Positions 1-51,777 of a stretch of 64,000 nucleotides of DNA are shown here, one piece after another (the first letter of the stretch is position 1; every line of letters starts with the position of its first letter). The DNA is from Octopus bimaculoides (lineage: Eukaryota): positions 135,760,531 through 135,824,530 of the forward strand of contig NC_068983.1 of NCBI RefSeq assembly GCF_001194135.2, in the 5' to 3' direction. A program made the position numbers and the translations under genes. The notes beneath the pieces are model-generated. The model was not told the origin of the DNA. It searched no databases and was given only the letters and a program-made list of their open reading frames with translations.

Positions 1-104
1 CATAGTCTGGAGCAACACAGTTTTGTCCAACATTGATAAGTTTTCCCCAAATGATCCTTTGTGCCACAACTTCCAAGTTACAGTTTTCATCCACATAAAC
101 AGGG
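1..104 (-). CDS. ALDH3: ALDH3-like paralog A, catalytic-Cys exon (runs off the window start)
   Basis: Minus strand ...cttctag|C CCT GTT TAT... translates (C)[34 protein letters not shown]. This matches the ALDH3 NxGQxCxAPDY motif, with the Cys codon at 17-19. Phase-2 start matches the preceding exon and the paralog B exon at 60580. Confidence 0.93.
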
Positions 105-224
105 CTAGAAGGAAGAACCCAGTAAATCTATTAGTTGTTTGTATAAAGTGATCTCTTAACGATTTATGAATGGTTTTGGAAAACATTGTATGACCAGGCC
201 TAGAGTATTTACAACTAAATGGGT

Positions 225-385
225 GTGAGCAGGGAAGTGTAGGTAAGAAGTTTACTTTACAACTATGTAGTTTTAGGTTCAAATCTATTGAGCAGTACCT
301 TGGGCAAATGTGTTTTATCATAGCTTCAGATCATCCAAACTTTGTGAGTGATATTTGGTAGACAGAGGTTGTGTGGAAGTTCATC
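225..385 (+). mobile_element. Degenerate tRNA-derived SINE head (same family as 5614/52030)
   Basis: Shares ggtaagaagttt..., ccttgggcaa and tttgtgagtg..tttggtagac blocks with the better-preserved copies. Confidence 0.55.
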
Positions 386-711
386 AAAGACTTGAATAGT
401 AGATTTAAAGTGTCACTTGATTTAACACAACCACCTGTTCCTTAGGCACCGTTAAGAAAATACATTCTATTTTAAAGATTTGGGTTGAGAATGAATGTCT
501 TAATATTTTTTTTTCTCTTCTGATGCCAGCAATCTTCACTGAAAGCTTTTAATTCTTGTTTGAGGGCAAGTAATTTGCATTCAATTATTCAGTTTTCACT
601 ATCTCCAAACTTCCTTTTTATTTTATTTTTCACTCTTTGTTGATGGGGAATAGTAGTTATTTGTTCATTTGCTTGTGATAAACAATACCATACGACTGAT
701 ATTCAAGCTTG

Positions 712-748
<37 letters not shown>

Positions 749-824
749 GTGTTTATTGATGTTAGGGTGTCTGTTGACATGTATAGGTGTATCTGTAGAA
801 AAACAAAATGAATTTTATGTATAC

Positions 825-988
825 CATTTGCCACTCAGCTGTAAGGTAACAGGTGTGAGGAATTTTGATGCAGCAGCCATAACAGCCCGACCAAAACTTG
901 AACTTCCAGCAAAGAAGATGTGATCAAATCTCTGATCCAGTAGGTCTGTGAGCTCTTCAGTACCTCCAGGATACACACATATACATTC
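825..988 (-). CDS. ALDH3: ALDH3-like paralog A, Rossmann/general-base exon (164 nt)
   Basis: ag|GAA...AAA TG|gtat. Translates [54 protein letters not shown]. Same length as the paralog B exon 55538-55701, with 30/54 aa identical by hand count. Confidence 0.95.
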
Positions 989-1654
989 CTAAAGGAAGGA
1001 AGAAAAGAAATATATGGATCAGCTTTATATAAAGCAAAAAATATTGTTTTAATTACCATTGATATAGAAAAGACAACAGGACCAACCAGTCATTCTTTAA
1101 ACTAAGTAAATGACCTGTCTAGTATGTATGGTTAAATCAGAGGTCAGTATGGTTAGGAGAGTGTCCTGGTCACTGGAATGTCATGTAGCTATTGTTATTT
1201 AGACCCATGTCAGCCCTGGCCAATCAGACTTATGATCAAATGCATTCCAACTCTAACCATCCTATATTGTTATATCAGTGCATATATTGTCTAATGTATC
1301 CTTCTTCAGATGGATATTGTCTTTAGAAGACGATAGGGTGTGATCCGAGGGAGATTTGACTGTTGTGTTTAGTAAGTTGAGTGGTTGCATAGAAGCTCCC
1401 TCGCTGGTTCATTGTATTGTTAGTTTTCTGTAGTGGTCAAGGTTGTATAGACTTTTTGTAATGTTTACCTTCAGAGACTGTTTAATATTGCTTAGTAATG
1501 ACCAACTGTGGTGTAGTATAATTTAGTGATTAAATTTCTGTTATTTTGAGGTCTGTGGTGGTCAATTGAAATATAACATTCAGTGTTGGTCAAAGACCCT
1601 AATGTAGTGGTATGTCATTGTTTAACCCTAGGAAAACTCTCATTGAATAAACCT

Positions 1655-1870
1655 GATACTGGTTTCAAATTTTGGCAAAAAGTCAGCAGTTTCAGTGGAG
1701 GTAAGTAAATCAATTACATCAATTCAGTGCCCAGTTGGTACTTATTTTACAGAGCACAAAAGAATGAAAGGCAAAGTCAACCTCAGTGGAACTGGAACTC
1801 AGAACATAGAGACAAACAAAATACTCCAAAGCATTTTGCTTGGTGTGCTGATGATTCTGCCTGCCATCCA
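1655..1870 (-). mobile_element. SINE family B copy (degenerate)
   Basis: The block ttggtacttattttac...aatgaaaggcaaagtcaacctcag...gaactcagaac is shared with 6040, 11410, 22138 and 61360. Confidence 0.65.
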
Positions 1871-2277
1871 CTTCAGAACAAACCTAATGATAAAGACATT
1901 TCAACTATAACCATCTCATCTTTTTGTACATCTAGGCCAACACTTTTCTGTTATTTCCTATCTTTTTTAAGATGGCAGGATGTGATTTGAGGGAAATTTA
2001 GCTGCTATTTCTAACAGGTTGTAGAACAACATGGAAGTTCCAAGAACAGATCTTGATCCAAGAATTGCAATCATTGTAAAATTGAGGAATCTTTTGTGAA
2101 TCAACCTTTTCTAATCTTATCCAAAAAACTAAATGTGGTGAGGTATGGAATTGGTAGAATGTCAAACAAAACCTCTGGAGTTCTTTTCTATTTGGGTGCA
2201 ACACCTGATAGCATCTACTTTACTGCTCATCCTTATAAAGTCAATAAAATAAGTAGAAAACTTTAGAACTGACTTAC

Positions 2278-2363
2278 GGTGTCCATATATCTAGGTATAA
2301 GGGTTTCTATCAGTTGACTTGTTTGTGGGGCAAATTCTGATGGTTTTAACATTGCACAGTTTC
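2278..2363 (-). CDS. ALDH3: ALDH3-like paralog A, KPSE exon (86 nt)
   Basis: ctctag|GA AAC TGT...GAC ACC|gtaagt. Translates (G)NCAMLKPSEFAPQTSQLIETLIPRYMDT, containing the ALDH GNxxxxKPSE motif. Confidence 0.95.
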
Positions 2364-2411
2364 CTAGAGAAAAGACAAGAAATTGATCAAACAACACATT
2401 TTATATATAAA

Positions 2412-2885
2412 CTAGCTGACTCCGTGCCGTCAAAAATGACGACTAATTGTAGTATTTTATATATAAAATAGATACATAATAATCACACATACAAACATTC
2501 ACATACTTCCCTTGTACACATACACACATATACTCACACTATTTGATTTTTCTTTTCAGTGTTGAATGTTAACTCACACATACAAACATTCACATTTTGT
2601 CATCACCCCTTCCTTCCTTATTCATCTATCACCCCTTCCTTTCTCATTCATATGTTATGACGGAGAAAACACAAGAGTATTATTATGCCACCATCCCACT
2701 TACATTGTGCACGCACATACACATTCACATATCTCCATTTTTACATACACACACTTATACTCACTCAGAGTTGAAAAGCTGTTTGATTTTTTTTTTACCC
2801 CTTCCTTCCTTATTCATCTATCACCTTTTCCTTTCTCATTCATATGTTGTGATGGAGAAAGACACAAGAGTATTATTATAGTAGA
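2412..2885 (-). mobile_element. Non-autonomous Helitron
   Basis: Minus strand begins TCTACTATAATAAT and ends ...CAGCTAG, inserted between A and T. There is a subterminal hairpin (cgtca-aaaa-tgacg) about 11 nt from CTAG, no TSD, and an internal duplication of about 80 bp. Confidence 0.7.
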
Positions 2886-3383
2886 TGCTTAGATAAAATA
2901 TTGCATGTTCATTTACCAAATATTAATTCCTAACAAAGACACATATCACACATGTTGAATGAAGGCATAGTCAGTTATATTGACTGGTATCCTATTTTAT
3001 TGCCTGGGAAAAATTAAAGGCAAGGTTCATCACAGCAGAATTTGAACTTAGGATATAACAGACCATAACTAAATGCTGATTGGCATTTAATTATGGTCTG
3101 AAGATTCTGCCAATCTTCAATAATATTAACTAAATGCAATGTTTATTTATATACATGTGTACATTTACATCAATTCTGAGATAAAATAATTGTAATCTAA
3201 GGCTAATAAGAGAGTAATCAATTTGTTTCAGCTATAATAGGTATTTATATTTATATAGATTTTAAAATAAATACTTTGTTTATAAGCTAAACCTAATAAA
3301 GTAGTAATCTAAATGATCTGTTCACTTATACATACACACACATACAGACACATACATGTATGTATGTATGTGACTGTATATGC

Positions 3384-3850
3384 TGCTCTTCATCATCATC
3401 CCCTCCTCCCCTCCTCCTTCTCCTCCTCTTCTCTTCCTCCTCTTCTCTTTCTCTCTTCTTCTCTTTCTCTCCTCTTCTCTTTCTCTCCTCTTCTCTTTCT
3501 CTCCTCTTCCTTTTCTCTCCTCTTCTCTTTCTCACCTCTTCTCTTTCTCACCTCTTCTCTTTCTCTTCTCTTCTCTTTCTCTCCTCTTCTCTTTCTCTCC
3601 TCTTCTCTTTCTCTCCTCTTCTCTNNNNNNNNNNCTTCTCTTCTCTTTCTCTCCTCTTCTCTTTCTCTCCTCTTCTCTTTCTCTCCTCTTCTCTTTCTCT
3701 CCTCTTCTCTTTCTCTCCTCTTCCCTTCCTCTTCCTCTTCCTCTTCCCCTTCTCTCCTCTTCCTCTTCCCCTTCTCTCCTCTTCCTCTTCCCTTTCTCTC
3801 CTCCTCCTTCTCCACCTCCACTCCCTCTTCCTCCATCATCGTCATCATCG
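3384..3850. repeat. Polypyrimidine/polypurine low-complexity tract (TTCTCTTTCTCTCCTC-like units) with a 10-N gap
   Basis: Direct inspection; almost only C and T on the + strand. Confidence 0.9.
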
Positions 3851-3869
3851 TCACCATTTTGAGGTTCAA

Positions 3870-4170
3870 CATTTTTAGATATTAACCTAGATAACCCATC
3901 TGCATGGCTTAACTTTTTTGAGGGGAGGTATTCCATTTTGAAATTGTAGTTCAACAAAATGGTTCCCCATCTCTGCAATCTATTGACAGTATGTGCTGAG
4001 ATGCTCGTCTTAGAGCCAAATATAGTCAATAAGTGGTGATGATCGGTTTGCAGACAAAACCTTCTGCTATGGATGAACATATGGGACTTTTTTACAGCAT
4101 AAATAATTGCCAAAACTCCTTTCTCAATCTGGCTGTAATTCCTCTCAGTGGGCAATAGTGTATGATGCAT
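3870..4170 (-). mobile_element. Ty3/Gypsy LTR-retrotransposon pol fragment (RNase H region)
   Basis: Translation ERNYSQIEKGVLAIIYAVKK...LQTDHHHLLTIFGSK...NRLQRWGTILLNYNFKMEY...HADGLSRL is the typical Gypsy RNase H signature. Confidence 0.85.
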
Positions 4171-4231
4171 GTGCTACATGTTTTGTATTACTATCTTCAT
4201 AGTCAAGTACATCAACAGCAACAGCAATATC

Positions 4232-4513
4232 AAAATCAAATCAAATGGAAATTGTAGTTGTGACCCCTGTGCCAGTAGCACATAAAAAGCACTATCCGAA
4301 CATGACTGGTTTCCATGCTGGTGGCACGTAAAAAGCACCATCCGATCGTGGTCGATGCCAACTCCTCTGGCCCCTGTGCTGGTGGCACGTAAAAAGCACC
4401 CACTACACTCTCAGAGTGGTTGGTGTTAGGAAGGGCATCCAGCTGTAGAAACTCTGCCAGATCAGATTGGGGCCTGGTGCAGCCTCCTGGCTTCCCAGAT
4501 CCTAGTTGAACTG
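4232..4513 (+). mobile_element. 3' UTR fragment of the RTE-type LINE family
   Basis: gtgctggtggcacgtaaaaagcacc subrepeats and the ggaagggcatccagctgtagaaactctgcc block are shared with 13620-14992. Confidence 0.75.
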
Positions 4514-4791
4514 AGGACACTCAGATTTACCCAGCAAGAAAAGCTACCAGAGCCTAGCAATTTATTTGGACCATTGTGGTTAGCTGGCACCTGAAACCGA
4601 CTTGAGAGAAAACACGGTCACCACTAGGATAATATATCCCTGTAAACTCATTTTTAAATATATATATATATGACTTTTATGGTACAGGTTTGGGTATGTG
4701 GTAGCAAAGTGTTTAAAGGTAAATGTCTTCTGTAGCCTTGAAGTGGTCGATGACTTGTGAGTGAAATTGGTAGTCAGAAAAATAAATACAT

Positions 4792-4965
4792 GTGTGTGTG
4801 TATGTGTGCACACACACACACACACATATATATATACATACAGGCACATACATACATACATATGTACGTACATACATACATACATACATACATACATACA
4901 TGCATGCATGCATGCATGCATACATACATACATACATGCATGCATGCATACATACATACATATGT
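4792..4965. repeat. Compound microsatellite (TG/CA/TACA/TGCA)
   Basis: Direct inspection. Confidence 0.9.
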
Positions 4966-5015
4966 AAGCATGTAGGTAAGATTTTTAGGAGTAACATGGT
5001 GAATGTGAAACCTAC

Positions 5016-5151
5016 CTGCAGCTAATATTCCAATTAAGGGTGAGAAAAGTAATTGAATTGGGTAATTCCATGGTGCAATCACCAAGATCACACCAAATGG
5101 TTCTTTCTTGATAAAACAGTCATCAGCAAGATTAAGGAAATCTTTGGAGAC
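5016..5151 (-). CDS. ALDH3: ALDH3-like paralog A, WNYP exon (136 nt)
   Basis: ttaaag|GTC...GCA G|gtagg. Translates [45 protein letters not shown], containing the EPxGV and PWNYP motifs. Confidence 0.95.
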
Positions 5152-5613
5152 CTTTAAAATAAGAAAATAATTTGTCAGCTTTTGGTGGAGGAATTGCGTG
5201 AACAGAATAAATATGATGTAGAAGAAAAGTTAGGGTTGGTGGTAACAGTGTAGTTAATTTACAAATTCATAGATACTGGTGTTCCAGAAAGGAGAGGAAA
5301 AAGAAGATGGGGGATGAAGAGTAAGTAGAAGGTGAAAAAGAGGAAAGAGGGGCATTGGAAAATCTATATTTTATATTGATCTAAGCATATTCATATTTAA
5401 AAATTTGCAAAGGTCCTGTACACCATTCTCCTCAAAATCAACAATAACAAAATAGCCAAAAATATAAAAATTATAATTCCTTATAACCAACCACGATATT
5501 CTCATTTTTATAAGTTCTATCTCTATTATTCTTATTCACATTACTCCTATATCTAAATACTTATACATAGAAAATATACCTGTTATGGAAAAAACCTTTG
5601 ATTATAACAGATA

Positions 5614-6024
5614 TACTCTTTACTCTTTACCCTTTTACTTGTTTCAGTCATTTGACTGCGGCCATGCTGGAGCACCACCTTTAGTCGAGCAAATCGACCT
5701 CAGGACTTATTCTTTGTAAGCCTAGTACTTATTCTATCGGTTTCTTTTGCTGAACAGCTAAGTTACAGGGACGTAAACACACCAGCATTGGTTGTCAAGC
5801 GATGTTGGGGGGACAAACACAGACACACAAACATACATATATATATACATATACATATATACGATGGGCTTCTTTCAGTTTCCGTCTACCAAATTCACTC
5901 ACAAGGCTTCACTCGGCCCGAGGCTATAGTAGAAGACATTTGCCCAAGGTGCCACACAGTGGGACTGAACCCGGAACTATGTGGTTGGTAAGCAAGCTAC
6001 TTACCACACAGCCACTCCTGCGCC
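5614..6024 (-). mobile_element. tRNA-derived SINE family A, near full length
   Basis: Minus-strand head ggcgcaggagtggctgtgtggtaag...ccgggttcagtcccact (A/B-box-like) and an AGTAAA-repeat tail. Homologous to 42454 and 52030. Confidence 0.85.
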
Positions 6025-6039
6025 TGTATGTATAAATTT

Positions 6040-6252
6040 GGTTCCAAATTTTGACTCAAGGCTAGCAATTTCAGGGGGAAGGGCTAAGTCAATTACATCA
6101 ACTCTAGCTCTCAACTGGTACTTACTTTATCAACCTCAAAAGGTTGAAAGGCAAAGTCAACCCAGCGGAATTTGAATTAAAAATGTACCGATGGATGAAA
6201 TACCACTAAGCATTTTGCCTAGTGTGCTAACAATTCTTCCAGCACACTGCTT
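6040..6252 (-). mobile_element. SINE family B copy
   Basis: Homologous to 22138-22357. Confidence 0.7.
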
Positions 6253-7209
6253 AAGCATGTATAATGAAAAAAAAAAGGAATAAACTTAAAAATAAATATC
6301 AATATTACCTGTAAACCTCCAATTTATATTAACAATAAGTTAAAATCTTTTTGATTTATTGTAAATTATGTGGACAAATTGCCATGTTTAATAGAATTAG
6401 AATGGTTTTTACACTTTTAAACTTGTGCAACTCCTTGGCAAAAATGAATTATATAGATACAAACTTTTTTATCTTCTCATTAATGATAAGGGAAGGGAAC
6501 AAAAAAAATTTCCCTAATATTTTGGTGGTGTTGCAAACTTGGTATAAATCAATTTGAGAACCACTGTACAAAAGGCATCTATGGACCAGGTAATGGCATT
6601 AAATTGGGTTAGTGATTAAGTTTAGCAATCAAGTGGGCCACGGTATGATTTGAACTCATAATACAAAGAGGCAAAATAAATACTGCAAGGCAACTCATCT
6701 GTAACTCTCTAACAAGTTCATTAGTCCACTGCTGTGGGCAAATATTTTATTTCTTGACACTGAAAAGGTGGAAGTCAAAACTGACTTTGCAGGGATTTGA
6801 ACTCAGAATGCAAAGAGCTGGATTAAATATTGCAAGTTATTTCACCACAAAATATTTAGTACTTTTATTTCAACCAATCATTTTTGGTCATTATAATTAT
6901 ATAGTATTATTAGTAATTATAATTGTGTAATAATTATTTACTGAAACTGGATGGAATGTAACCATAATATTGCAACCTCATGTGAGCAAGAAATGTAGCA
7001 TTTTTAGGAATACAACAGTGATCCCAGTCATGAGTTCAGCAAAAATTGCCAGTATAGGGAAATGTAAGTCACTTTCGGGTTTCAGGTAGTAGTGTCTGGT
7101 GGTTGGCTGGAGCAGGAGTTACAATGGCTACCCAACAACAACAATAACAACTAGGATTCATGAAAGAACATTTACCATTTAAAAAAGTAAACAAATATGA
7201 AAGTCTTAC

Positions 7210-7305
7210 CTTTACAGGTGATACCCATGATTCAAAGTTGTTCAAAGTGTAGATAATTTCATTACAAATGAAGTCAATTTCCATCAAAAGACTTTCAAAT
7301 GGGTC
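7210..7305 (-). CDS. ALDH3: ALDH3-like paralog A exon (96 nt)
   Basis: aaccag|GAC...AAG|gtaaga. Translates DPFESLLMEIDFICNEIIYTLNNFESWVSPVK. Same length and phase as the paralog B exon 46178-46273. Confidence 0.9.
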
Positions 7306-7429
7306 CTGGTTGGGAGGAGAAAGAAGGTAAAACAAAATCCACAGTAATTATCATCATGTCCTTATCAACATTATCGTCTTCATCACTGATACCACCACCA
7401 CTAACATCACCATCTCTGGTACTGATTTC

Positions 7430-10243
7430 TGAAGTGCACCAAAGAAGAGAGAGTTGAACTTAGCTCTTTCTCCATGACTCCTTTTCAGTTGATGCCAAGG
7501 ACATATTTTTCAAAGGCTATTGTGAATCTATATCACTATTCGACAAGACCAAAGACATAATCATTGTTGGTCTTTATAGGCCTCCCCAAGCACCTCTAAA
7601 GTGCTTTGAAAAGTGCCTCAACAAAATCAAGTCCTTCCTTCAAAAATACAACTCTGAAAACATACTAGTGATGGGTGATTTTAACCTCCCTCATATAAAC
7701 TGGCCCACAAATACTCTGAAGTTTGGCAAATGCTTTACATCAGATAAAGCAGCAGCAGAATTACTCTTTAATCTAATGAATAAATTCTTCCTGGCTCAGC
7801 TAGGGCTCGAACCAACAAGACAGAATAAAACGATCTTGGATTTAATATTAACCAACCACTCTAGCTCCGTTCTAATATTAACCAACCACTCTAGCTCGTT
7901 TTTCAGTTGAAAAGAACTCTCCTCTCAGACCATGACATGATACTCTGCAATTCTAATTCCCAGCATATCAAAACCAAACCAGCCAATCCCACCCCATGGC
8001 ACTCTTTTGTCAACATAAACCTCCACAAAGCAGACTGGGGAGCAATCAGAAAGGATCTGTCCTTCATCGACTGGTCTTTCACTCTCAGTTCCACTCACAT
8101 TGAGACCGCATGGCAACACTTTGAGAACATTGTCGCCTATACATGCTCAAAATATGCTCCTACGAAATCCACTAACACAAACAGAAACCGGCTCCTTAAA
8201 AAGAAAAAAAAAAACACTCACCAGGCGCATCAAAAGACTCAATAAAAAAATCAACCAATTAAAATACTCCACATACGACATCCACATTCAACAACAAGGA
8301 AAAGGCTGGAGTTGGAAAAACTTTATATGCAGACTGATATGAAAACCTCCATTGAAAATCAAAGAACTGTGGAGGAACAGTAGGTAACCAAAAACATCAA
8401 ACAGAACCCAAAAGTGTTCTACTCTTATGCAAATAAGTATAGAACTGCTGTCTCACCCACTGGGCCATTGATCAATGATAACGGCATTCCCCAACACAAT
8501 GCTAAAGAAATGGCAGAAATACTGCAGAAACAATACTGCTCTGTCTTTAGTGATCCCATTGATATTGATGTAAGAGGAGTGAATGAAGTTGATTCCCAAC
8601 ATAAAATCTCGGACATAACCTTCACTGCCTCAGACATCATAGCAGCAATAAATAAGGTCAAATACTATTCTGCTGTAGGCCCTGATACATTCCCTGCTAG
8701 TCTCCTGAAGGAATGTAGATAACAACTTGCAGTCCCTCTGACCAACCTCTGGAGAAATTCTTTAGACTCAGGTTATATACCAAAACAGCTCCTCTCCCAG
8801 TCTGTCATCCCAGTTTTCAAACAGGGAAACAGACCCCTCTCAGTCAACTACTGCCCAATCTCACTCACGTCTCACATCATTAAAGTGTTTGAAAGAGTGG
8901 TAAGATCAAGGATAGTTGACTTCCTGGAGACCCACAAACTCCTAAATGCAAACTCCTAAATGGCTTTCACTGTGGCAGGGAGTGTCTAACACAGCTCTTA
9001 CACCACATTGAAGATATACTTAAGACCTTGGGAACAGGTTCGAACTCTGATGTCATATATCTTGACTTCAGTAAAGCGTTCGACAGGGTTGACCATAATA
9101 TCTTACTCTCCAAATTGGCAAATGTTGGAATCTGTGAAAAACTTCTACACTGGATTAAGTATTTCCTGGTGAATAAAACACAAGAAGATGTGGTCAATAG
9201 AATCCACTCAAGCTCAGCAAAAGTCACCAGTGGTGTCCCTCAGGGGACTGTCTTGGGCCCACTCCTCTTTATAATTTACATAAATAACCTTTCCAGCGTC
9301 GTAAATCACTGCAAAGTGAAAATATTTGCTGATGACACTAAGCTCCAGCAAATAATTAATGAAGAAGAAGACCGAACCCAAATCCAGTCTGATCAATATG
9401 TTGTGAGTCAATGGGCAGACAAAAATAAAATGCCACTGAACGAGGGAAAATTTGAGCTGATGCATTTTGGAAGAAAGTCTATACTAAAACAACCATACTC
9501 TCTTCCTTCAGGGGAACCGCTTACGGCATCTAATGATATCAGAGACCTGGGTGTAATTGTTGATAACAATCTCAGTTGCAGTGCCCACATCAACAATAAG
9601 GTGGATATAGCTCGTAGGATGGGCTCCTGGATCTTAAGATTCTTCCAGTCCAGAGAACAAAATGTCATCATTCCACTTTTCTCCTCCTTTGTACGGCCAC
9701 ACCTCGAATACTGCTGCCCTTTGTGGTCTCCCCATACAAAAAAAAAAAACATCTCAAGGATTGAATCACCCCAGAGGGCACTCACTAAACGAATTGAAGG
9801 CATGACTGATCTCGATTTCTGGGACCGCCTTAAAACCTTGAAACTCTACTCTCTCCAGCACCGCTACGAGCAGTATATCATTTGTACGATGTGGAGAATA
9901 TACCACCAGCATTGCCCAAACGACCTGAACATTAGTTTCAAGATTCATTCAAGGCTGGGACCATGGGCCATACGTCCCCTGCCCAATTCAGGATTACAAC
10001 ATATAGGCACACTGCAACATAATTTCTTTTCCTCAACACGCCCTGCCCTGTTTAACATTGCCCCAAAACTGATTAAAGAGGAAAAAGATCCCATCATCTT
10101 TAAACGGAGTCTGGACAGATTTCTTCAAGGAATACCAGATAAGCCACCCATACCTGGATACAACTCACTCAACAAGAACTCACTACTTGAATGGACCATA
10201 GACAAAACTTGACTGTAAAAAGGATTTAGATTTAGGTGGTGCT
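7430..10243 (+). mobile_element. CR1-clade LINE, 5'-truncated and disrupted (APE endonuclease + RT), antisense in a paralog A intron
   Basis: Endonuclease remnant (GLYRPP...VMGDFNLPHINW) and RT motifs YLDFSKAFDRVDH, GVPQGTVLGPLLF, IFADDTK in ORF 9028-10212. Frameshifts and stops upstream; ends at an N-gap. 5' boundary approximate. Confidence 0.9.
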
Positions 10244-10547
10244 NNNNNNNNNNNNNNNNNNNNNNNNNNNNNNNNNNNNNNNNNNNNNNNNNNNNNNNNN
10301 NNNNNNNNNNNNNNNNNNNNNNNNNNNNNNNNNNNNNNNNNNNNNNNNNNNNNNNNNNNNNNNNNNNNNNNNNNNNNNNNNNNNNNNNNNNNNNNNNNNN
10401 NNNNNNNNNNNNNNNNNNNNNNNNNNNNNNNNNNNNNNNNNNNNNNNNNNNNNNNNNNNNNNNNNNNNNNNNNNNNNNNNNNNNNNNNNNNNNNNNNNNN
10501 NNNNNNNNNNNNNNNNNNNNNNNNNNNNNNNNNNNNNNNNNNNNNNN

Positions 10548-10610
<63 letters not shown>
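10548..10610. repeat. (CA)n microsatellite at a contig edge
   Basis: Direct inspection. Confidence 0.95.
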
Positions 10611-10614
<4 letters not shown>

Positions 10615-10778
10615 AGTATGTAAAACATAATAAAAATCTAAAACATCGTAAAATAAAAGGTATGAGCATTCCTGAAGTAGCTATTTTATTGTTAAAAAAA
10701 TCTATTTTTAACATTATATTGATATTTAAATGCTGCTTCACTTGTGGGGTACCTGGTATTCATATTCTTGATACTTAC

Positions 10779-10922
10779 TTTACACAAGTCATTTTTCAGA
10801 GCTTCTACAAAAAGATTTCTGTTCTCCTCAAACATTAATAGCATAGCCTTCAGTTGCTTTTGGCGCCAGTCTATATGCTTGGTAATTCCACTCTGGAAAG
10901 ACTGCCGAAGCTTGAAAACTTG
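10779..10922 (-). CDS. ALDH3: ALDH3-like paralog A, N-terminal helical exon (144 nt)
   Basis: ttgtag|CAA...AAA|gtaagt. Translates QVFKLRQSFQSGITKHIDWRQKQLKAMLLMFEENRNLFVEALKNDLCK, a typical ALDH3 N-terminus. Same length as paralog B 45116-45259. Confidence 0.92.
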
Positions 10923-11409
10923 CTACAATATAATAAGAGAGAGAAAATATGAGTCAAAGTGGGATCTACTATAAGCCTGTCAACTTTGTCAAAAAAGCAA
11001 GCAAATGTCATTCAGTAAGCTCCACATATTTTCAATCTTAGCCATGAGACCATATGATATATTTCATAATAAAAATAGGATAATTATTGTTAAAAATATT
11101 GGCTAGTTATTCTTGTGTCACAGGTTTCCCCTACAGAGTTGATTGAGCTGTCTGACAAAAACTATAATGAAAGAATAATGCTTTCTACACCAGGTACTAG
11201 GCCAATAGTTTTGAGGGGATACTATTGATCTCAGTGCTTGATTGATATTTCATTTTAGCAACTCTGAAAGAATGAAAGGAATCTTCAAATCCTGATTTTG
11301 GCAGGATTTGATTTCACAATGTAAAAAGTCAGAAATAATATTGCATAACATTTTTTACAAGGCTTTAGCATTTTCCCCTTCTGCTCACCACATTCCAAAA
11401 TTGAAAGAA

Positions 11410-11628
11410 ATAATTCTTTCTAATTTTGGCACAAGGCTAGCAATTTTGAGGAGAGGGGAAAGTTGATTACATTGACCCCAGTACTCAACTGGTACTTATT
11501 TTATCAACTCTGAAAGGATGAAAAGCAGTCAACGATAATAGCATTTGAACTCAGAACATAAAGAGTCAGAAGTGATACTATTAAGCATTTTGCCCACTGT
11601 GCTGATGATTCTGACAGCTCACCACCTT
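11410..11628 (-). mobile_element. SINE family B copy
   Basis: Homologous to 22138-22357. Confidence 0.75.
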
Positions 11629-11979
11629 TGAAATGAAAGAAATAATGATGTCTGCTTCATAGGCAAAAGGTTCACTTTTTTTTAAGCAGAAGGCATATTA
11701 ATTAATATATTTATATTTTACACAACAACAAGATAACAAATTTGTTGGCTGAATTGTTCCAGCACATGCTTGGTATTTACTTTATCAAATGCAGATAGAT
11801 GAATTTACCAAATCAGTTATATTGGGATTAGACATCTGCTTTCTATTTGATAATATTAATATCATTTCTATTGACATACTATATAATAATCTCTCAAAAT
11901 GATGTTAATTTATGAACTTTTGTATGTAAATACCTTTTTGGAATGATACATAAGTATAATTTCTATTTTTATATGCAGT

Positions 11980-12440
11980 ATTTATTGATTTAACAAAGAT
12001 TTCAATACTATGAAGAGAAATCGATTGTGGTAAACTGGGATAACCTTAAGTTTCTTCACCAACTTCATGGGGGTTGTTGCAGTTGTTTAACCTGAATCAG
12101 TTCTGATAAAACAAATCTATGATCAAAGGCATTCCAGCCATGACCATCCTATATTTTTGTATGACTAGGACTACATTCCCCAATGTGTCGTTCCTGTTTT
12201 AAGATATAGCATATGACTCCAGGGAATTTGTCTATTATTTCTAGCAAGCTGAATGATTTCATAGAGACTTCCTTGATGGCTTGGTAGAGAACTCATGAAG
12301 ATATTTAAATTTTTATTCATTAGGGTTAAAAAAGGGCCTTTGAAACACAATAAAACATTTTCAGTTACACTTCCTATCTCTAAAAGCATGAAGCAAGGAT
12401 GGGTTCTGGATCCAGTATTTTTCACAACCTTCTTCAATTA
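11980..12440 (+). mobile_element. Highly degenerate RTE/BovB-like RT fragment interrupted by another repeat
   Basis: Remnant motifs FIDLTKDFNT (about 11985-12010) and KQGWVLDPVFFTTFF (about 12390-12435) resemble DLTKAFDT and KQGCVLAPTLF. Confidence 0.45.
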
Positions 12441-13064
12441 CATTTGTGCCATTTTATTTTGCTAAACCAAGTACCAAATTAATTTTTATTAGTTTCATTT
12501 CGTCCTATCATATGTAGATTTATCTACAAATTATGGGATATTTTATCATTAAATTGTGAGAAAACCATAGATTTCAAAAAGTTCCATTTTGCAGACCTGT
12601 GTAATCATGCATCAAAGTGAAAATTTTCTTTAGCTGTCTCTTCAGATGTGTTTGCTCAGAATCATTTGCAAGTTTTAGTTTTGTAAATTTACAAGTGCAA
12701 GAAGTAACACTGGGGGTCCTAACTAAATACTTACTAAAATACACATGGTTTTATTTTATTTAAACTGAAAATTAATAGGAAATTTGAAATTATTTCTTTT
12801 TTACACTGTTCAATAATTTTCAATAATTTTGCTTCTTAAACTCATCAATAAGTTTGTATCATTAAAAATCTGTTATAGAAGTCACGGAATTCCAAATCTT
12901 TAAGTCTTATGGATTAATAATGATTTTCTTAAAACATACATCCAACTGAAAGAGAAATGTGAAAGCTATCTTATTAGTAAAAAATGAATGTCTATGAATC
13001 ATCTACAGCAAATATACTTTGATAAGTTTATTTGTATTTTTAGAATTATTTTATCATTTCTTAC

Positions 13065-13083
13065 CAGCTGCAGAGTAGTTCAT
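13065..13083 (-). CDS. Candidate start-codon mini-exon of paralog A (MNYSAA-)
   Basis: ATG AAC TAC TCT GCA GCT G|gtaaga resembles ALDH3 N-termini but is phase 1, whereas the next exon is phase 0 at its first AG. An alternative phase-0 candidate is ATG TGT ATT TTA|gtaagt at 12735-12746. Confidence 0.3.
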
Positions 13084-13159
13084 GTGTTTGATGTGCAGAA
13101 TGTTGGCAGTAAGTGTATAAAGAAATAAATAACCCTTTATCAGTTACTTGATAATACAG

Positions 13160-13520
13160 ACACATGTATGGTTGTGTGGTAAAGAAGTTTGCTTCCCAAC
13201 CATTTGGTTTTGAGTTCATTTCCTCTGTGTGACAACCTGGGCTAAAGTTTTCTACTATAAATTCAGGCTGACCAAAGCTTTGTGAGTGGATTTGGCAGAT
13301 AGAAACTGAAGGAAGCCCAGTGTGTGTGTGTGTGTGTGTGAGTGTATGTGTTTATGTTTCCTTGTCTTGACATCACGTGATTGTTGTAAACAAGCATCAC
13401 TGTCATTTAAGCAGTGTCCCCTGTTTCCAGTCTTTCAAGAAAACATGTCTGGTCATGACAAAATATTACTTTGCTTCGAAAGAGGTGAAGATTAGCATCA
13501 AGAAGGGCATCTGGTGCTAG
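13160..13520 (+). mobile_element. tRNA-derived SINE, family A head with a different 3' body
   Basis: Head ggttgtgtggtaaagaagtttgcttcccaacc...ccaaagctttgtgagtggatttggcaga, a central (TG)n, and a distinct tail ending agaagggcatc. Confidence 0.65.
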
Positions 13521-13619
13521 AGATGTACCCAGTGTAAGCTATGGACACATAAGAGGTGCAGCAATATCAAAGGAAGGTGAACTAGCAAGATAGTTTTTGT
13601 ATGTGGCAGATACTCAGGA

Positions 13620-14944
13620 GCAAGAAACACTGAAAATGTGCAGAGAACAACTTCTGCCACATTCCAGGGAGAAAAACTAGAAGTAGTTGATAGCTTCCAT
13701 TATCTAGGTGACCACGTTTGTAGTGGGGGTGGGTGCGCTGAAAGTGTAGCTGCTAGAATAAGAATAACCTGGGCAAAGTTCAGAGAGCTCTTACCTCTGC
13801 TGGTGACAAAGGGCCTCTCACTCAGAGTAAAAGGCAGACTGTATGATGCATGTGTATGGACCACCATGCTACATGGCAGTGAAACATGGGCTGTGACTGC
13901 TGAGGACATGCATAAGCTCACAAGAAACGAAGTCAGTATGCTCCAATGGATGTGTAATGTTGGTGTGCATACTCGACAGAGTGTAAGTACCTTGAGAGAA
14001 AAGTTAGACCTAAGAAGCATCAGACGTGGTGTGCAAGAGAGATGATTGCACTGGTATGGACATGTGGCAAGAATGGATGAGGATAGCTGTGTGAAAAAGT
14101 GCCACACCCTAGCGGTTGAGGGAAACTGTGGAAGAGGTAGAACCAGGAAGACCTTGGATGAGGTGGTGAAGTACGACTTTCAAACTTTAGGCCTCACTGA
14201 AGCAATGACTAGTGACCGGGACCTTTGGAAATATGCAGTACATGAGACGATCCAGTAAGCCAAGTGAGAGCATAATCTGTGGCCTCTGCCAGAAGTGTAG
14301 CCAGCTCACTTATTCGTATCTTTACTTCATTGGACACTAAATTCTGCTTGCGAAAACCTGTTGAGGCAAGTGAATTTGAAATCGAAATCGAACCAAATTC
14401 GACAACTGGCACCCATACCAACCTCTCCTTCATTGGACACTAAACTCTGCTTGCAAAGACCTGTTGGGGCAAGTGAAATCAAAATCATATTTGAACCATA
14501 TTCGATGACTGGCACCTGTGCCAGTGGAGCACTAACAACACTGTCCGAGCATGATCATTGCCAGAGCAGTTGTCTGGCTTCTGTGCTAGTGGTCCGTAAA
14601 GAGCACAATTTGAGTGTAATCGTTACCAGCTTCGCCTTACTGGCACTTGTGCTGGTGGCACGTTAGAAAATCGTTTGAATGAGGTTGTTGCCAGTGCTGC
14701 TGGACTGGCTCCTGTGCAGGTGGCATATAAAAAATACCATTTTGAGCATGGCCGTTGCCAGTACTGCCAGTGGCACATAAAAGCACCCACTACACTCTCA
14801 GAATGGTTGATATTAGGAAGGGCGTTCAGCTGTAGATACTCTGCCAGATCAGATTGGAGCCTGGTGCAGCCATCCGGTTCACCAGTCCTCAGTCAAATCG
14901 TCCAACCCATGCTAGCATGGAAAGCGGACGTTAAACGATGATGG

Positions 14945-14992
<48 letters not shown>
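13620..14992 (+). mobile_element. RTE-clade LINE 3' portion (ORF2 C-terminus, hairpin-repeat 3' UTR, (GAT)n tail)
   Basis: Translates LEVVDSFHYLG...MLHGSETW...(stop)LHWYGHVARM...RGRTRKT, the RTE C-terminal motifs. One in-frame TGA at 14043-14045; (GAT)n tail at 14937-14992. Confidence 0.85.
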
Positions 14993-14993
<1 letters not shown>

Positions 14994-15131
14994 ATAAACA
15001 CACACAAACATAACAGAAGTAAATAGACACCAGATAAAACATCGTTTTATGTTCATTCTAACTTGTAAAGCTTTATATTTTTTTTCAATTGACGTTTTTA
15101 TGTTTCAGGTTCTATATGTGACTGTTTAATC

Positions 15132-15481
15132 ATGCCATGTACAAAAGAAGCCTTGGAACTGTCTTAATTTCAAAGAGGCCAGATTGTGGGTCAGTCTGAA
15201 GGTGGACATGTCAGCATAAAATCACAGAAGATCTTGGGATCCCACTTTCTACAGTTAATAGAGTGATTGTGCAATTCACCAGAGAGGAGAAGGAGTCCAC
15301 ATCACTCCACTCAGGTTGACCAGGGCTCTCTGACAGGACCCTTCTCTTTGTTAAGAGAAGTGTAGAGGATAATCCTTATTACAAGACCTCTGACATAGCA
15401 GAGCATGTTCATGTCAGTCCCAGAACAGCTGTCAGGTATCTCCACAAACTTGATTACTATGGCAGAGCAGAAGTGAAATGA
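15132..15481 (+). mobile_element. Tc1-like transposase N-terminal (HTH) remnant
   Basis: With one frameshift and stops: ELS*FQRGQIVG...[13 protein letters not shown]...HSG*PG...VKRSVEDNP...VSPRTAVRYLHKLDYYGR. Confidence 0.7.
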
Positions 15482-16613
15482 CTTCACTGTTATGAACTTA
15501 ACTGAAATCATAACTCCTGCCTTTAAAACCAATGTTTACCTATTTTACATATGTTGTCAAAAAGGCATGGATATCATACTTTGATTTCAAATTTATTTGG
15601 TTCTATATCTATTTTCAAACTCAAAATTGTTATTGTTATTTAGGCACATATTTAAAATCAGACACTTCAACCACGTATTTTTTTTTCTCAGAGTGTATCT
15701 AGGGCGACATATCCAAAATGTCCTTTTTTTAAAATGTTAAGGTAATATTTAAGTGAAACTTAGCTACTGTTACTGTTGCAGAGGCTGTAAATAGGTGAAA
15801 AAAGTTGATTGAAATATATCTACAAAAGTTTTAAAATATAAATCTAGTGTAGTGAAAAAGCTGTTACGTTAATATTTCTCTTAGTCAGAGTTCTACATTA
15901 CAAATAAGTATTCACTGAAGAAGAAAATACTCAAACAGTGTTTAGGATTATTGAGGAAAATATTATGGGTTAATATATTAATACTTACTTCAGTAGCTGT
16001 CATGTTGGTATTATTCATCATTTATAATGATACACTACAAATCCAAAATAGTTAATATGAACAGTAGACCAATAAAACAAAATCCTTTACACAAAATGCC
16101 AGAATTATTTTTATGGTGGTTTCGAACAGCTTAAATTCATGATTTAGGTAACTGTTTTTCCTACCAAGAATCCGGTAAAAATGTGCTGGTTGTACAGATT
16201 CTCATACACACACATACATACAAAGGTATATTTGTTTGTATATATATATATATATCTATATATATGTATGTACTTTCTCCTGTCTGACTTGGTTGTCTCA
16301 TTCAACTCATTTGGAAGTTCTTGTTGACATGCAAAATGTATCATGTGACTAAACATTGTAAATTGGTCAGTGGGATCCTACTCAATTACTTAATTACTCA
16401 TTGTGAATAAACTCTTGTGAATAAATGAATCAGTAAGTAATTCACTCCAAATAACTGTCAGAAATTGTTCTGTGAAAGAGTGTATGTTTGAAACACATAC
16501 AACTAATCAATGCTTCCCTCCTGCCCAACACCTGACAATATAGACACAGGTTAATAGAGACATTGAAATAATGAAGTATGAAATTTCAGAAAGCATGTTA
16601 TGTTGATTTCTTT

Positions 16614-16617
<4 letters not shown>

Positions 16618-16650
<33 letters not shown>

Positions 16651-16683
16651 ACGGCTGATATTATTATTATTATTATTATTATT

Positions 16684-16723
<40 letters not shown>
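16618..16723. repeat. Compound trinucleotide microsatellite (GCT)n(ATT)n(ATC)n
   Basis: Direct inspection. Confidence 0.95.
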
Positions 16724-18130
16724 GTAAAAGCCATGGGATCAAGCTGGAAAGTGGTGAAATTACAAAGGAAGTCGGAGAGGAAGGATATAAGTACCTAGGT
16801 ATCATTGAAAGAGATAAAATGAATGAACACAAGATGAAAGAAATGTACAGGAAAGAGTATTTGAGGAGAACTCAGTTTGTTCTCCAATCAAAGCTAAATG
16901 GCCACTATAAGATTAGAGCAATTAACACATGGGCTGTTGCTTTGATGAGATATGGGGCAGGAATAGTATCTTGGAAGAAGCATGGATTTCAAGAGATAGA
17001 CTGGAGAACACATAAATTAATGACAATGAACAAGGTACTACACCCCAAAGTGATGTGTTAAGATTGTATGTAAAGAGGAGGGAGGGAGGATGGGGATTAG
17101 TGTGTTGTGAGGGTTGTGTAGGGGAAGAGGAGAATAGCCTGGCTTGGTGTATCAAGAGAAGTAAAGAAGAAATGATTGAAGCAGTGAAAATACAGGGAAC
17201 CTTAAAAGTGAACAAAGCCATAGATCCAATAAAATTTAAGAAAGACCAGAGAGAGTAGATGAAGATTTGGCAGGACAAGAAATTGCACTGTCAGTTTGTG
17301 AAGAATAAAGATGAGATTGATTGGAATAGAACCTGGCAATGGCTGTAGAAAAGAGACTTAAAAGGGCCCAGTGAAGCATTAGTGTGCAGCACTCAAGAAC
17401 AAGCTCTCAGAACAAGCTACTCCAAATATCACATTGATAAAATCACTGACTCGCCACAGTGTAGGATGTGCTCTGAGAAGAGAGAAAGTATAAGCCATAT
17501 TGTTAGTGAGTGCTGTAAGCTCACACAATGTGAATATATAAAAGGAGACACAACAATGTGGCCAGATATGTCCACTGGCTGTTGTGCAGTAAAGCAAACC
17601 TCGAGAGAGCTGAACAATGGTCTGAACACAAGCCAGAGGGAGTAATGGAAAACAAACATTACAAAATACTCTGGGATTTTAACATGCAGTGCGATCAGGT
17701 CATAGAGGTGAGATGACCAGATATTGTGATCATCCATAAAGATGAAAAAGAAGTAAAGATAATAGATGTTGCAATACCAGGTGATTCGAGGGTGAAATGT
17801 AAGGAAACAGAAAAGATTGAGAAATACCAATCGCTGTGGAATGAAATAGGAAAGTTATGGGTCATGAGGTAAGTAATGGTGATACCAGTGGTAATTGGAG
17901 CATTAGGAGCAGTTTCCAAGGGATTTGAAAAACAGTAAGAATATTGGAGCTGCTGTCGGGCTCGAGGCGATCCATAAGACAGCTTTGTTGGGTACAACTC
18001 ACACTCTAAGGAGAATATTGTCTTTTTGCGTCACAGGAGAAGGCTCTACTTGAAACCTTTGGTAATTTGTTGTTGTCTGCTTTCCAGTAAAGAATAACTG
18101 GCAATTAAGAACTATCTGAGAGGCTTTCAT
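16724..18130 (+). mobile_element. R4/Dong-clade non-LTR retrotransposon, 5'-truncated and decayed (RT thumb, CCHC zinc finger, REL endonuclease)
   Basis: Motifs GYKYLGI, AINTWAV, RLYVKRREGGWGL, CRMC...SHIVSEC, ILWDF, PDIV...IIDVAIPGD...EKIEKY. Followed directly by (AAT)n. Confidence 0.8.
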
Positions 18131-18642: not shown

Positions 18643-19420
18643 AAAATTAGCTAGCAGATGTGAACAGAAACCTCTGCATGGCAAGTATGTGGCCTATAGC
18701 AAACAAGCTGATGTCGACCAGAAACACATGCATCAATGGTTACGAAGCTCAGGGCTAAAAGCAGAGTGAAGGTTTCCTATTAGCTGCTCAAGACCAAAGC
18801 TTATTAACCNNNNNNNNNNNNNNNNNNNNNNNNNNNNNNNNNNNNNNNNNNNNNNNNNNNNNNNNNNNNNNNNNNNNNNNNNNNNNNNNNNNNNNNNNNN
18901 NNNNNNNNNNNNNNNNNNNNNNNNNNNNNNNNNNNNNNNNNNNNNNNNNNNNNNNNNNNNNNNNNNNNNNNNNNNNNNNNNNNNNNNNNNNNNNNNNNNN
19001 NNNNNNNNNNNNNNGTCGATTCTCTGGGACTTCCCCATACATACGACAAAACTATAAAAGCTAATAAACCGGATATTATTATAAAAGATTAGACAAAGAA
19101 GATGTATTTATTAATTGACATGAGTATTCCTTGCGGTCATAATATAGTGGCGAAAGAATTTGACAAGATCAGTAAATATACAGACTTGCTAATAGAAATT
19201 GAAAAAATGTGACATCTCAAGGCGACTACCATACCAGTGATTGTAGGATCTCTAGGAATGATAAAAAAAAAAGGTACTGAAACCTATTTGAAAATGATAT
19301 CAGGCTTACTATCCCTACAGGAAGTGCAAAAAATCGTGTTAGCTGGAACAACTCATGTACAGAGAAGAGCATTATCCCTGTGAAAACAACATCCAAATTT
19401 ATTTATTTATTAAATTTTTT
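18641..19420 (+). mobile_element. Second R4/Dong-clade element fragment (spans an N-gap)
   Basis: KPLHGKY...HQWLRSSGLKAE*EGFLLAAQDQSL and ANKPDIIIKD...LIDMSIPC...KISKYTDL...IPVIVGSLGMI. Starts directly after (AAT)n. Confidence 0.8.
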
Positions 19421-32519: not shown

Positions 32520-34270
32520 TCAGTAAAGAATCTCGGCAGATGGTACAGAGACTTACTAAATAATAAGTAGCAAAGCAAAGAAACGCATGATTTAGTGGAA
32601 CAAGGACTAAAGGCAATTGACAGAACAACATTACTGGGGAAATTCAAATGTTGGATACTGCAATTTGGACTGTACCCAATGATAATGTAGCCATTGCAAA
32701 TGTATGAAATAGCCTCGAGTAGAGTAGAAAGGATGGAACAAAGATGCAGTGTGTTTATCAGAAAATGGCTGGGTCTTCCAAAACCACTTATTACAACTGC
32801 ACTATATGGAAAACCCTTGCTGCAACTACTGATAACATCAATTGCCAAAGAATATAAGGCAGGAAAGGCAAGGACAATAATGATGCTAAGGTATTCAAAA
32901 GATCAGAACATCCGAAATAACCCTTCAAAGGTATGAACAGGGAGGAAATGGAAAGCGGAAGAGATAGTAAACAGGGTGATCAGAAAGCTAAGGCATGCTG
33001 ATATAGTTGGAGCAATACAAGAAGCAAGAGCCGGTCTAGGGTTGTACAATTTCAAGCCATTTTGCATGAGCAGTGTAAAAGAGATGAAAGTGGCAGTGGT
33101 ACACGAAGTGAGTAAAGAGGAAGAAGAAAGGCAAAATGTACGTTTGGTGCAATGTAATGAACAAGGACAGTGCCTGAGATGGGAGGAATATGTAGTTAGT
33201 CACAGAATCTCATGGAAGGAACTTTGGGCTTGGGAACAAGCAAGAACGTCCTTTTTGATCAAGTCTACCTTCGATGTTTTACCTTCACCAACGAATTTAG
33301 TCTGGTGGAACATACAAACAACTGATGACTGTAGATGCAGAGAGAAAGCGACGGTGAGACATGTTCTGTCAAACTGCAGGCTAACACTAGACAGATATAC
33401 ATGCTGTCACAATCAAGTCCTCGATGTCATAAATGCAACACTCAAGGAGAAGATTAAGGGATATAACAGGGGAGAATACTCAAAAGTGGAAAAGTGTGGA
33501 AAAATATACTTCCAGAAGGTGAGAAAATGACATAAGGACAGGCCTTCAAATAAAATATACAAGACAGACGAAAGATGGAGGGGATACTGGGAGCTGGCTG
33601 CAGATTTGGAAAGACTGTTAATATTTCCATTCATAAAAACAACAAAAAGACCAGACTTAATCCTATAGAACACAGAATAGAAAATTGGAATTTTGCTAGA
33701 GCTGACAGTGCCATGGAAAGAGAATATTGCTAATGCAGAGCAACGGAAGGAGAAGAGGTATGAGAGATTAATTGAAGAATGCGAAGAACAGGGATGGACT
33801 GTCAAGTATTGCCACCTGGCAGTGGGGGCTAGAGGCTTCATTGAAAGGAAAAGTACGACATTATTTAAAAGAAGGTTTGCATTTTCAAGCTCAGAGTGAA
33901 AAACGTAATAAGGAGGAAACAGGTGGCAGTCGAAAAAGCCAGCTTCTATAAATGGCTGAATCGAGAAGACCCAAAATGGCTTGAAAGCCATAACATGCTG
34001 ACTGGGAAATAGTGTCACTAAGTGAGGCTGGCTGACACTTAAGCAGCATCGCTGATTGACAGGTGGGCTAAGGTAGTGATCTCATCCATAGCACACCCTC
34101 CATCTGGTTTGAAGGCTTGTACCACCAAACAGCTGGTCAGCTCTGACTGCTGGAACTGAAAATAACATGACACTGTTGAAAGGCAGGTTTAGAGAGGGCA
34201 CAGGCTAAAACTACGCGTGTCCTCCCCCTCCATTGGCCAGTTGAAGCTTACACAGTGTCATGTGATGGTT
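32520..34270 (+). mobile_element. HERO-clade (REL-endonuclease) non-LTR retrotransposon, 5'-truncated and decayed
   Basis: VKNLGRWY, GKFKCWILQFGL, RKWLGLP, STFDVLPSPTNL, CRC...HVLSNC...RYT..HNQVL, RPDLIL, ELTVPWKENI...RKEKRY, VGARGF. 3' boundary approximate. Confidence 0.8.
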
Positions 34271-45115: not shown

Positions 45116-45259
45116 ATTGTCAAAGAGCTGCGGCAGACTTTTTCTACTGGTTGTACACTTCCAGTGGAATGGAGACTTCACCAGCTGTCAAAAATTATGA
45201 AAATGTTGACTGAATGTCAACAAGAAATTGAAGATGCTCTTGTGAAAGATTTACATAGG
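45116..45259 (+). CDS. ALDH3: ALDH3-like paralog B, N-terminal helical exon (144 nt)
   Basis: ttctag|ATT...AGG|gtaagt. Translates IVKELRQTFSTGCTLPVEWRLHQLSKIMKMLTECQQEIEDALVKDLHR. The start exon upstream was not identified. Confidence 0.93.
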
Positions 45260-46177
45260 GTAAGTATTACTGAAATTTTCAAAAATTACCCATATCTATA
45301 ACACTTGCATTAATATTTTTTGTCAATGTTTAAAATGAAAGTCAGAGATAGAATGTTAATAAGAATATAATTTTTTGTTATATCATCTTTAGATTTAGTG
45401 GCCAAAAGTTTAGATTTAGTGGCTTAGTTGATACAGATGTTATTACCGGTAGCTTAGAAATAATGATGCATGGTTAAAGTTGGCAGAGATATTGGAGTGT
45501 CAGTGGCATTTATTCCAGCTCTCTGCTTTCTGAGTTCAAACTTTGCCAATGCCAACTTTACTTTTCATCCTTCAGGGTTTGATATATGAAGTACCAGTCT
45601 AGGGCAGTGAACTGACAATTTTTAGAATAGTATTTATTCTGTCTCCTTGCATTCTGAGCTCAAATCCTGTTATAACCTACATGAGAGATAAATTTAACCA
45701 ATTTAGCAGTACTATATGATCCTTGAATACTTTTAGTGGAGTCCAGTTAGTTGCAAGCATTTGGCTCAGGCTTCTGGTTTAAGGATACTTTCCTCTCTCT
45801 CTTTCTCTCCTCCACCAGGCTTGGAGGCCCTGGAAAGGATTATGAATATTGCCCTTATTCCTATATAAGAAATTAAAGAAAAAACTATGAACTCCACTAA
45901 AAACAAAAAATTCCTAAGATGATCAGAGATCGAGTCAATGAAAGTGTAGTGCAGTTATAAATATTGAACAAATTTTAATTTCAAAATCAACATATCATTT
46001 TACATCACTTTATTCCATGCTGGCATGTGCTGGATTGCAAATTTATAATCTGAAAATTAATGCTTTATTAGTTTTCACTGATGAGCTATTTTTACTTCTT
46101 TATTTTTTTTATTGTTATATTCTCTTATTAAAAAAATTATTTTTTTGTTTATTTTCATTATACCATTGGTGGTACAG

Positions 46178-46273
46178 CCGAAAAATGAGGCAATGTTTTT
46201 TGAAGTGATTTTTGCCAGAAAGGAAGCACTAGATGCTATAATCAGTCTCAAAGAATGGATGGAACCAGAAAAA
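46178..46273 (+). CDS. ALDH3: ALDH3-like paralog B exon (96 nt)
   Basis: tacag|CCG...AAA|gtaaac. Translates PKNEAMFFEVIFARKEALDAIISLKEWMEPEK. Confidence 0.9.
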
Positions 46274-50632: not shown

Positions 50633-50651
<19 letters not shown>

Positions 50652-50665
<14 letters not shown>

Positions 50666-50860
50666 GAATTTACAAAAAAACAAAAGACGAAGACGAGTGT
50701 GTAAACAACAAACAGGTGTATTAGTTAAACGCTTGGGAAGTGAGAGTTTTTTTATGTTTCGAGCCTACGCTCTTTGACAGAATGGAACACAGAAATAAGC
50801 AGAGAGAGGAAATAAGAAAGGTTTAGTGGCTAGTGATCTATCATGGCGAATGGCCACATG
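50652..50860. mobile_element. Unclassified interspersed repeat adjoining (TA)n
   Basis: Complex, relatively CpG-containing sequence starting directly after (TA)n at a contig edge. Family not established. Confidence 0.3.

Positions 50861-51745: not shown

Positions 51746-51777
<32 letters not shown>

Follow-up and report, generated by a model that had tools for sequence, protein, structure and literature searches.

A class 3 aldehyde dehydrogenase paralogue with an intact visible reading frame and changes at three nearly invariant sites of its nicotinamide pocket

In aldehyde dehydrogenases (ALDHs), Glu268 (ALDH2 numbering) holds the water for thiol activation and thioester hydrolysis and must shift in concert with the nicotinamide, the swing of this residue being needed for deacylation (PMC8160307; PMC9007972). 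The loop after Thr186 (GxTxxG) contacts the nicotinamide ring (PMC9007972), and V189 and I192 of FALDH are listed by Keller et al. as expected NAD contacts. To judge by the titles of the papers concerned, efficient acylation in GAPN requires the invariant Thr244, a residue that makes a catalytic contribution in ALDH2. For the class 3 ALDHs, the evidence on the replacement of the active-site glutamates by glutamine is contradictory. The E207Q, E331Q, N112A and C241S variants of human FALDH were each without measurable activity, and the identity of the general base is debated (PMC4109017), whereas E209Q and E333Q of ALDH3A1 are credited with only marginal effects in the part of PMC5324060 that cites Mann & Weiner 1999. 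Our search of the literature found no measured effect of a change of the Gly211 equivalent to Ser and nothing informative on ALDH3 in cephalopods.

The window analyzed here is a eukaryotic stretch of 64,000 nucleotides with about 35% G+C, which contains introns, microsatellites, retroelements and N-gaps and carries two ALDH genes, paralogs A and B. The 243 visible residues of paralog A match the Pfam family PF00171 (Aldedh) with 127.9 bits (E 5e-37, cut-off 23). The best solved relatives of A are human FALDH/ALDH3A2 (4qgk, E 2e-71) and ALDH3A1 (1ad3/3sza), with the other ALDH classes at E 1e-22 or weaker, and its top database matches are mammalian ALDH3B1 proteins with about 50% identity. By these sequence matches, paralog A is an ALDH3-class gene. 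The Pfam match and the two best solved relatives also uphold the preliminary description of the locus, which had called it an ALDH3 paralog.

Paralog A lies on the minus strand at the beginning of the window, which contains 243 of roughly 470-490 codons; the equivalent of E333 (the second active-site glutamate, in the EEIFGP motif) and the C-terminus are situated beyond the window start. The first visible coding exon (QVFKLRQSFQSG...NDLCK; 10779-10922, 144 nt) is flanked by the acceptor ttgtag and the donor gtaagt, and its size and phase match those of exon 45116-45259 of paralog B. A short ATG-bearing exon was sought upstream of 10779-10922 and was not found. Next come an exon of 96 nt (DPFESLL...SPVK; 7210-7305), one of 136 nt (5016-5151) with WNYP (5059-5070) and the Asn114 equivalent (5065-5067), one of 86 nt (2278-2363) with KPSE (2335-2346) and the Lys137 equivalent (2344-2346), the cofactor-pocket exon of 164 nt (825-988), which bears all of the unusual residues, and an exon with NVGQNC (1-104), which includes the equivalent of the catalytic Cys243 (TGT, 17-19) and is truncated where the window begins. 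Each of the six visible exons is open, and together they give one continuous frame; the five acceptors are AG with a polypyrimidine tract, and the five donors are GT. Over the 243 codons and 10 splice sites, there are zero stops, frameshifts or broken splice sites of the kind that mark a pseudogene. Re-reading of the minus strand found the positions first given for the Gln, Ser and Cys codons to be exact, and the open exons, the canonical splice sites and the WNYP, KPSE and NVGQNC motifs were all verified. A scan of all six-frame fragments of the window with an ALDH3 HMM detected no second copy of exon 825-988. Mutually exclusive splicing through a hidden alternative exon was thus ruled out, as the scan gave only the six exons of A and the eight of B.

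Paralog B lies on the plus strand (45116-62327), and its eight visible exons encode a canonical active site. The first four (45116-45259, 46178-46273, 52788-52923 and 53166-53251) are followed by an exon with FYTGS and TLELGGK (55538-55701), one with CGQIC (60580-60706), and the exons 61617-61720 and 62201-62327, the latter with PLMQEE, which contains the E333 equivalent. The early remark that paralog B keeps FYTGS is correct, since this motif is read together with TLELGGK at 55538-55701. A and B have identical exon sizes of 144/96/136/86/164 and identical intron phases, and the same is true of L001, a relative of paralog A that is described below. The pair is arranged head-to-head with a distance of about 34 kb (10922-45116) and has only 56% protein identity, so that the duplication must be old. 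In the interval 10922-45116, the ORFs all resemble those of retroelements; 13638-14045 and 32976-33530 are examples, and neither gave a Pfam match.

The introns of paralog A also carry mobile elements. A non-LTR retrotransposon (7668-10212, plus strand) sits in intron 2, antisense to the gene, and consists of an endonuclease fragment (7668-7907, plus strand, PF14529) and a reverse-transcriptase ORF of 394 aa (9028-10209, plus strand, PF00078). The best named relative of this LINE reverse transcriptase is a hypothetical protein of the octopod Argonauta hians with 56% identity; a cephalopod origin of the sequence is plausible but weakly supported. In intron 4 (3313-4170, minus strand), an RNase H fragment of an LTR retroelement (3880-4170, PF17917) adjoins an E/R/K-rich low-complexity repeat (3313-3885), which is S/L-rich on the other strand and has a 10-N gap. 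There are six N runs in the window (3625-3634, 10244-10547, 18810-19014, 50202-50632, 51000-51009 and 56890-57275), several of them beside TG/CA or TA microsatellites. An Rfam scan of the window found nothing.

The unusual residues of paralog A were numbered from the alignment with 1ad3, in which the ALDH3A1 residue equals the query position plus 5. They are Ala186 in FFAGS (GCT, 908-910; T186A), Phe191 (893-895; V191F), Ala194 (884-886; I/V194A), Phe202 (860-862; H202F), and, in TLQLSGK, Gln209 (CAG, 839-841; E209Q) and Ser211 (AGT, 833-835; G211S), all on the minus strand. Positions 191 and 194 correspond to V189 and I192 of FALDH. As residues 186, 191, 194, 202, 209 and 211 are encoded by the same exon, all of them fall in the exon that builds the cofactor pocket. 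Paralog A keeps Cys243, Asn114, Lys137, Glu140 (in KPSE) and the invariant glycines 187, 192, 212 and 240. It therefore has the nucleophile (Cys243) and the oxyanion-hole residue (Asn114) of a canonical hydrolytic ALDH and has replaced the Glu of the ELGG motif (E209 in ALDH3A1, E268 in ALDH2), Gly211 and Thr186. The E-to-Q, G-to-S and T-to-A changes with a retained catalytic Cys, which were the starting point of this analysis, are in this way found to be E209Q, G211S and T186A with Cys243 in place. Against the ALDH3 HMM, exon 825-988 scores 73.1 bits, compared with 97.6 bits for its counterpart in B. The residue after LSGK is a Cys with a split codon (TG/C) and not a Ser, as first written. 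A Cys follows ELGGK or QLSGK in A, B and L001 alike, with an intron-split codon (TG/C or TG/T) at 825-826/104 in A, 55700-55701/60580 in B and 6001-6002/10031 in L001. It is rare at this place (6 of 119 homologues); most ALDH3s have Ser or Asn.

To see how unusual these residues are, we turned to an alignment of the 120 best ALDH3 homologues, which come from mammals, fungi and bacteria. Column 186 is Thr in 119 of 120 sequences, column 209 is Glu in 118 of 119, and column 211 is Gly in all 119, while Phe at position 191 occurs in none of the 120. Conservation reaches 98% or more in 31 columns, and paralog A breaks exactly three of these, namely 186, 209 and 211. By the same measure, L001 breaks none of 28 columns and paralog B only one (P112A). 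Among the 115 fully covered homologues, 98 break no invariant column and only one breaks three. The pattern of three changed invariant sites is, as far as sequence comparison goes, more than chance. An exhaustive HMMER search of 1.84 billion protein representatives with the 54-aa exon as query gave 1810 matches, and Ala186, Gln209 or Ser211 was found in none of the best 150 of them; the natural ALDH3s of the 120-sequence alignment are likewise free of these three residues. One sequence, P0260 (TLNLAG), was considered as a natural variant and rejected, as it is frameshifted right after the motif.

These residues need not abolish the classical reaction. An ordinary active ALDH3 could use E333 as the base and tolerate E209Q, with T186A, G211S, V191F and I194A tuning the kinetics or the preference for NAD or NADP. 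The debate over the general base (PMC4109017) and the marginal effect of E209Q in ALDH3A1, as far as PMC5324060 reports it, leave room for such an enzyme, as do the retention of Cys243, Asn114, Lys137, Glu140 and all invariant glycines except 211 and the low dN/dS given below. Moreover, V191F introduces a larger and I194A a smaller side chain on the same helix, so that these neighbors could compensate for each other. Yet FALDH E207Q is dead (PMC4109017), the three sites show virtually no variation across 270 ALDH3-like sequences, bacterial to mammalian, which suggests a catalytic need, and the three changes are jointly unlikely to be neutral. We therefore regard an ordinary enzyme as somewhat unlikely. 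The preliminary description had mentioned the marginal effect of E209Q in ALDH3A1 as a caveat, which is justified and yet incomplete, because E207Q abolishes the activity of FALDH.

The age of the changes can be approached through L001, an A-type gene located at 461-17482 of a 175-kb ENA contig (ERZ21867824 ctg117111l), with at least six intact exons and with introns present. This contig is filed as 'metagenome', yet it bears an animal intron-containing ALDH3 and thus is host or eukaryotic DNA. Its likeness to the window is confined to the exons (73-80% nucleotide identity), indicating that L001 belongs to a different and fairly distant species. Over 163 aligned residues, L001 shares 77% identity with A, as against 56-60% with B, and the intron positions are common to all three. 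L001 reads FFTGSPNVGRVVM...TLELGGK with FFTGS, V191 and PLMEEE, which is a canonical active site, and the residues specific to A therefore arose on the branch of the window species after the split of A and L001. L001 is the sole A-type relative retrieved. Given its FFTGS and TLELGGK, the QLSGK motif is not fixed across orthologues. No orthologue closer than L001 was obtained: word-indexed protein searches gave one exon-ORF (P0001) and no mollusc ALDH3, the search of the representatives with the 54-aa exon gave nothing above 69% identity, and a scan of JGI metagenomes gave only intronless bacterial ALDH3-like genes with 39-48% identity.

Between A and L001 (489 nt), dN is 0.155 and dS is 1.2-1.8, which gives a dN/dS of 0.09-0.13. 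Averaged over so long a branch (dS >1), this ratio speaks to most of the branch and not to the period after the pocket changes. With B as the outgroup, A has 14 unique amino-acid changes and L001 has 7 (chi-square 2.3, not significant), and the unique nucleotide changes are 23 nonsynonymous and 29 synonymous in A and 13 and 30 in L001 (Fisher p 0.20, not significant), corresponding to a raw branch omega of about 0.23 for A and about 0.12 for L001. By these substitution counts, A has been under purifying selection for most of its long branch, and a trend toward faster change of its protein falls short of significance. The orthologue comparison called for at the outset had a divided outcome: LQLSGK is not fixed, as L001 is canonical, and the dN/dS of about 0.1 is far from 1. 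Together with the six intact visible exons, this ratio to the closest relative agrees with the original view that A is not an old, decaying pseudogene.

A young unprocessed pseudogene, or a duplicate at the beginning of decay, would be a different matter, and in that case the changes at the invariant sites would be the first visible damage. Three of the 14 changes specific to A fall in the 28 invariant among 163 columns, close to the 2.4 expected at random; the unique amino-acid changes in A are twice those in L001, and the visible part is half of the gene, all of which is compatible with recent decay. This explanation is nevertheless unlikely, considering that 243 codons and 10 splice sites are free of stops, frameshifts and breakage, that the raw omega estimated for the branch of A, about 0.23, falls well short of 1, and that the remaining conserved residues, catalytic as well as structural, are intact while the unusual changes cluster in one pocket.

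It is also conceivable that the changes are an artefact or a private allele or haplotype, or that RNA editing partly undoes them. The draft assembly contains six N-gaps, and the change from GGT to AGT is of the G-to-A type that is tolerated under the harm-permitting editing model (PMC6881472). All six gaps lie clear of the ALDH exons. An error would not typically leave five substitutions within about 80 bp, free of indels and in an undisturbed frame. A-to-I editing is abundant in coleoids, and a G on the 5' side of the edited A is disfavored. Such editing would turn the Ser codon AGT (833-835) into the Gly codon GGT and the Gln codon CAG (839-841) into the Arg codon CGG. The A of the Ser codon has a disfavored 5' G, Glu cannot be restored from CAG nor Thr from GCT, and the RNA folds locally with no greater stability than shuffled sequences do (z = 0.18). 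We consider this group of explanations very improbable.

We suggest that paralog A is a maintained ALDH3 paralogue with a remodeled nicotinamide pocket and strongly reduced classical turnover, a reading to which we give a probability of roughly 40%; in more general terms, the pattern of conserved and altered residues indicates that A is probably a slowed or repurposed enzyme. On this proposal, the A-type lineage, separate from the FALDH-like B, would have been kept under selection, and after the split from the L001 lineage A would have gained T186A, V191F, I/V194A, E209Q and G211S in the exon of the NAD(P) pocket. The protein is expected still to fold as an ALDH and might still bind an aldehyde at Cys243. 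With Thr186 and Gly211 no longer there to place the nicotinamide, hydride transfer would suffer, and loss of the Glu209 carboxylate would impair water-mediated deacylation. The outcome would be a strongly attenuated dehydrogenase, kept because it carries out a slow or specialized reaction or because it has a binding or structural function apart from catalysis.

A bolder form of the proposal holds that A is a cephalopod ALDH3 pseudo-enzyme under selection, which captures an aldehyde, binds a ligand or pigment, or gives up its acyl group to a non-water acceptor, the pocket having been remodeled. This is possible but doubtful; if it were true, cephalopods would have recruited ALDHs twice independently, the other case being omega-crystallin. 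In the original interpretation of the locus, the intact ALDH3 with an altered pocket has stood up; a neofunctionalized pseudo-enzyme, crystallin or acyl-transferase would be a further step, and A is outside the ALDH1/2 branch from which omega-crystallin derives. Few positions of ALDH3 are as conserved as Thr186, Glu209 and Gly211, and here all three have been changed naturally, in a protein that seems constrained and has kept the nucleophile. Paralog A could serve as a natural test of what the two active-site glutamates do in class 3 ALDHs, which is a matter of dispute, and also as a candidate for a novel function of the ALDH fold outside dehydrogenation, in a group with the precedent of omega-crystallin. 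Should A prove to be decaying, or to work as a normal enzyme, it would be an ordinary lineage-specific paralogue.

Transfer of the acyl group can also be considered in its own right, with A as an enzyme whose thioacyl-Cys is resolved by an acceptor other than water, by analogy with the CoA-acylating ALDHs. Loss of the ELGG Glu is common to the CoA-dependent ALDHs, of which methylmalonate-semialdehyde dehydrogenase (MMSDH; ALDH6) is an example. Paralog A resembles ALDH6 in that both are without this Glu and keep the Cys and Asn. A clusters with ALDH3, however, and does not belong to the ALDH6 clade. Furthermore, T186A and G211S would hinder hydride transfer, which precedes acyl transfer, whereas ALDH6, unlike A, keeps the Thr244 equivalent and the glycines for hydride transfer. 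No acceptor-binding feature was identified in A, and we regard an acyl-transfer enzyme as extremely improbable.

Compared with the described members of its own class, paralog A belongs to the same fold family as the vertebrate ALDH3A2/FALDH, ALDH3A1 and ALDH3B1, with 50-53% identity over 163-243 aa, and has WNYP, KPSE, GQxC, Cys243 and Asn114 in common with them. However, the vertebrate enzymes have Thr186, Val/Ile191, Ile/Val194, Glu209 and Gly211, where A has Ala, Phe, Ala, Gln and Ser. Paralog B and L001 have F(F/Y)TGS, V191, TLELGGK and the glutamates equivalent to E333, so that of the three genes only A is altered. The engineered FALDH E207Q and ALDH3A1 E209Q carry the same Glu-to-Gln change as A, but they are single mutants made in the laboratory, whereas A is a natural gene that combines this change with four further changes of the pocket.

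As precedents for an ALDH fold that is retained for structure or for binding, there are omega-crystallin and ALDH16A1, although their relation to A would be a functional analogy only. Omega-crystallin of cephalopods and scallop is an ALDH1-type protein; in cephalopods it is enzymatically inactive and is present in the lens, skin and light organ. It derives from the tetrameric ALDH1/2 branch, in contrast to paralog A, which is of the ALDH3 class. ALDH16, which has been termed a pseudoenzyme and for which a function in binding has been proposed, is without the catalytic Cys, whereas paralog A keeps Cys243.
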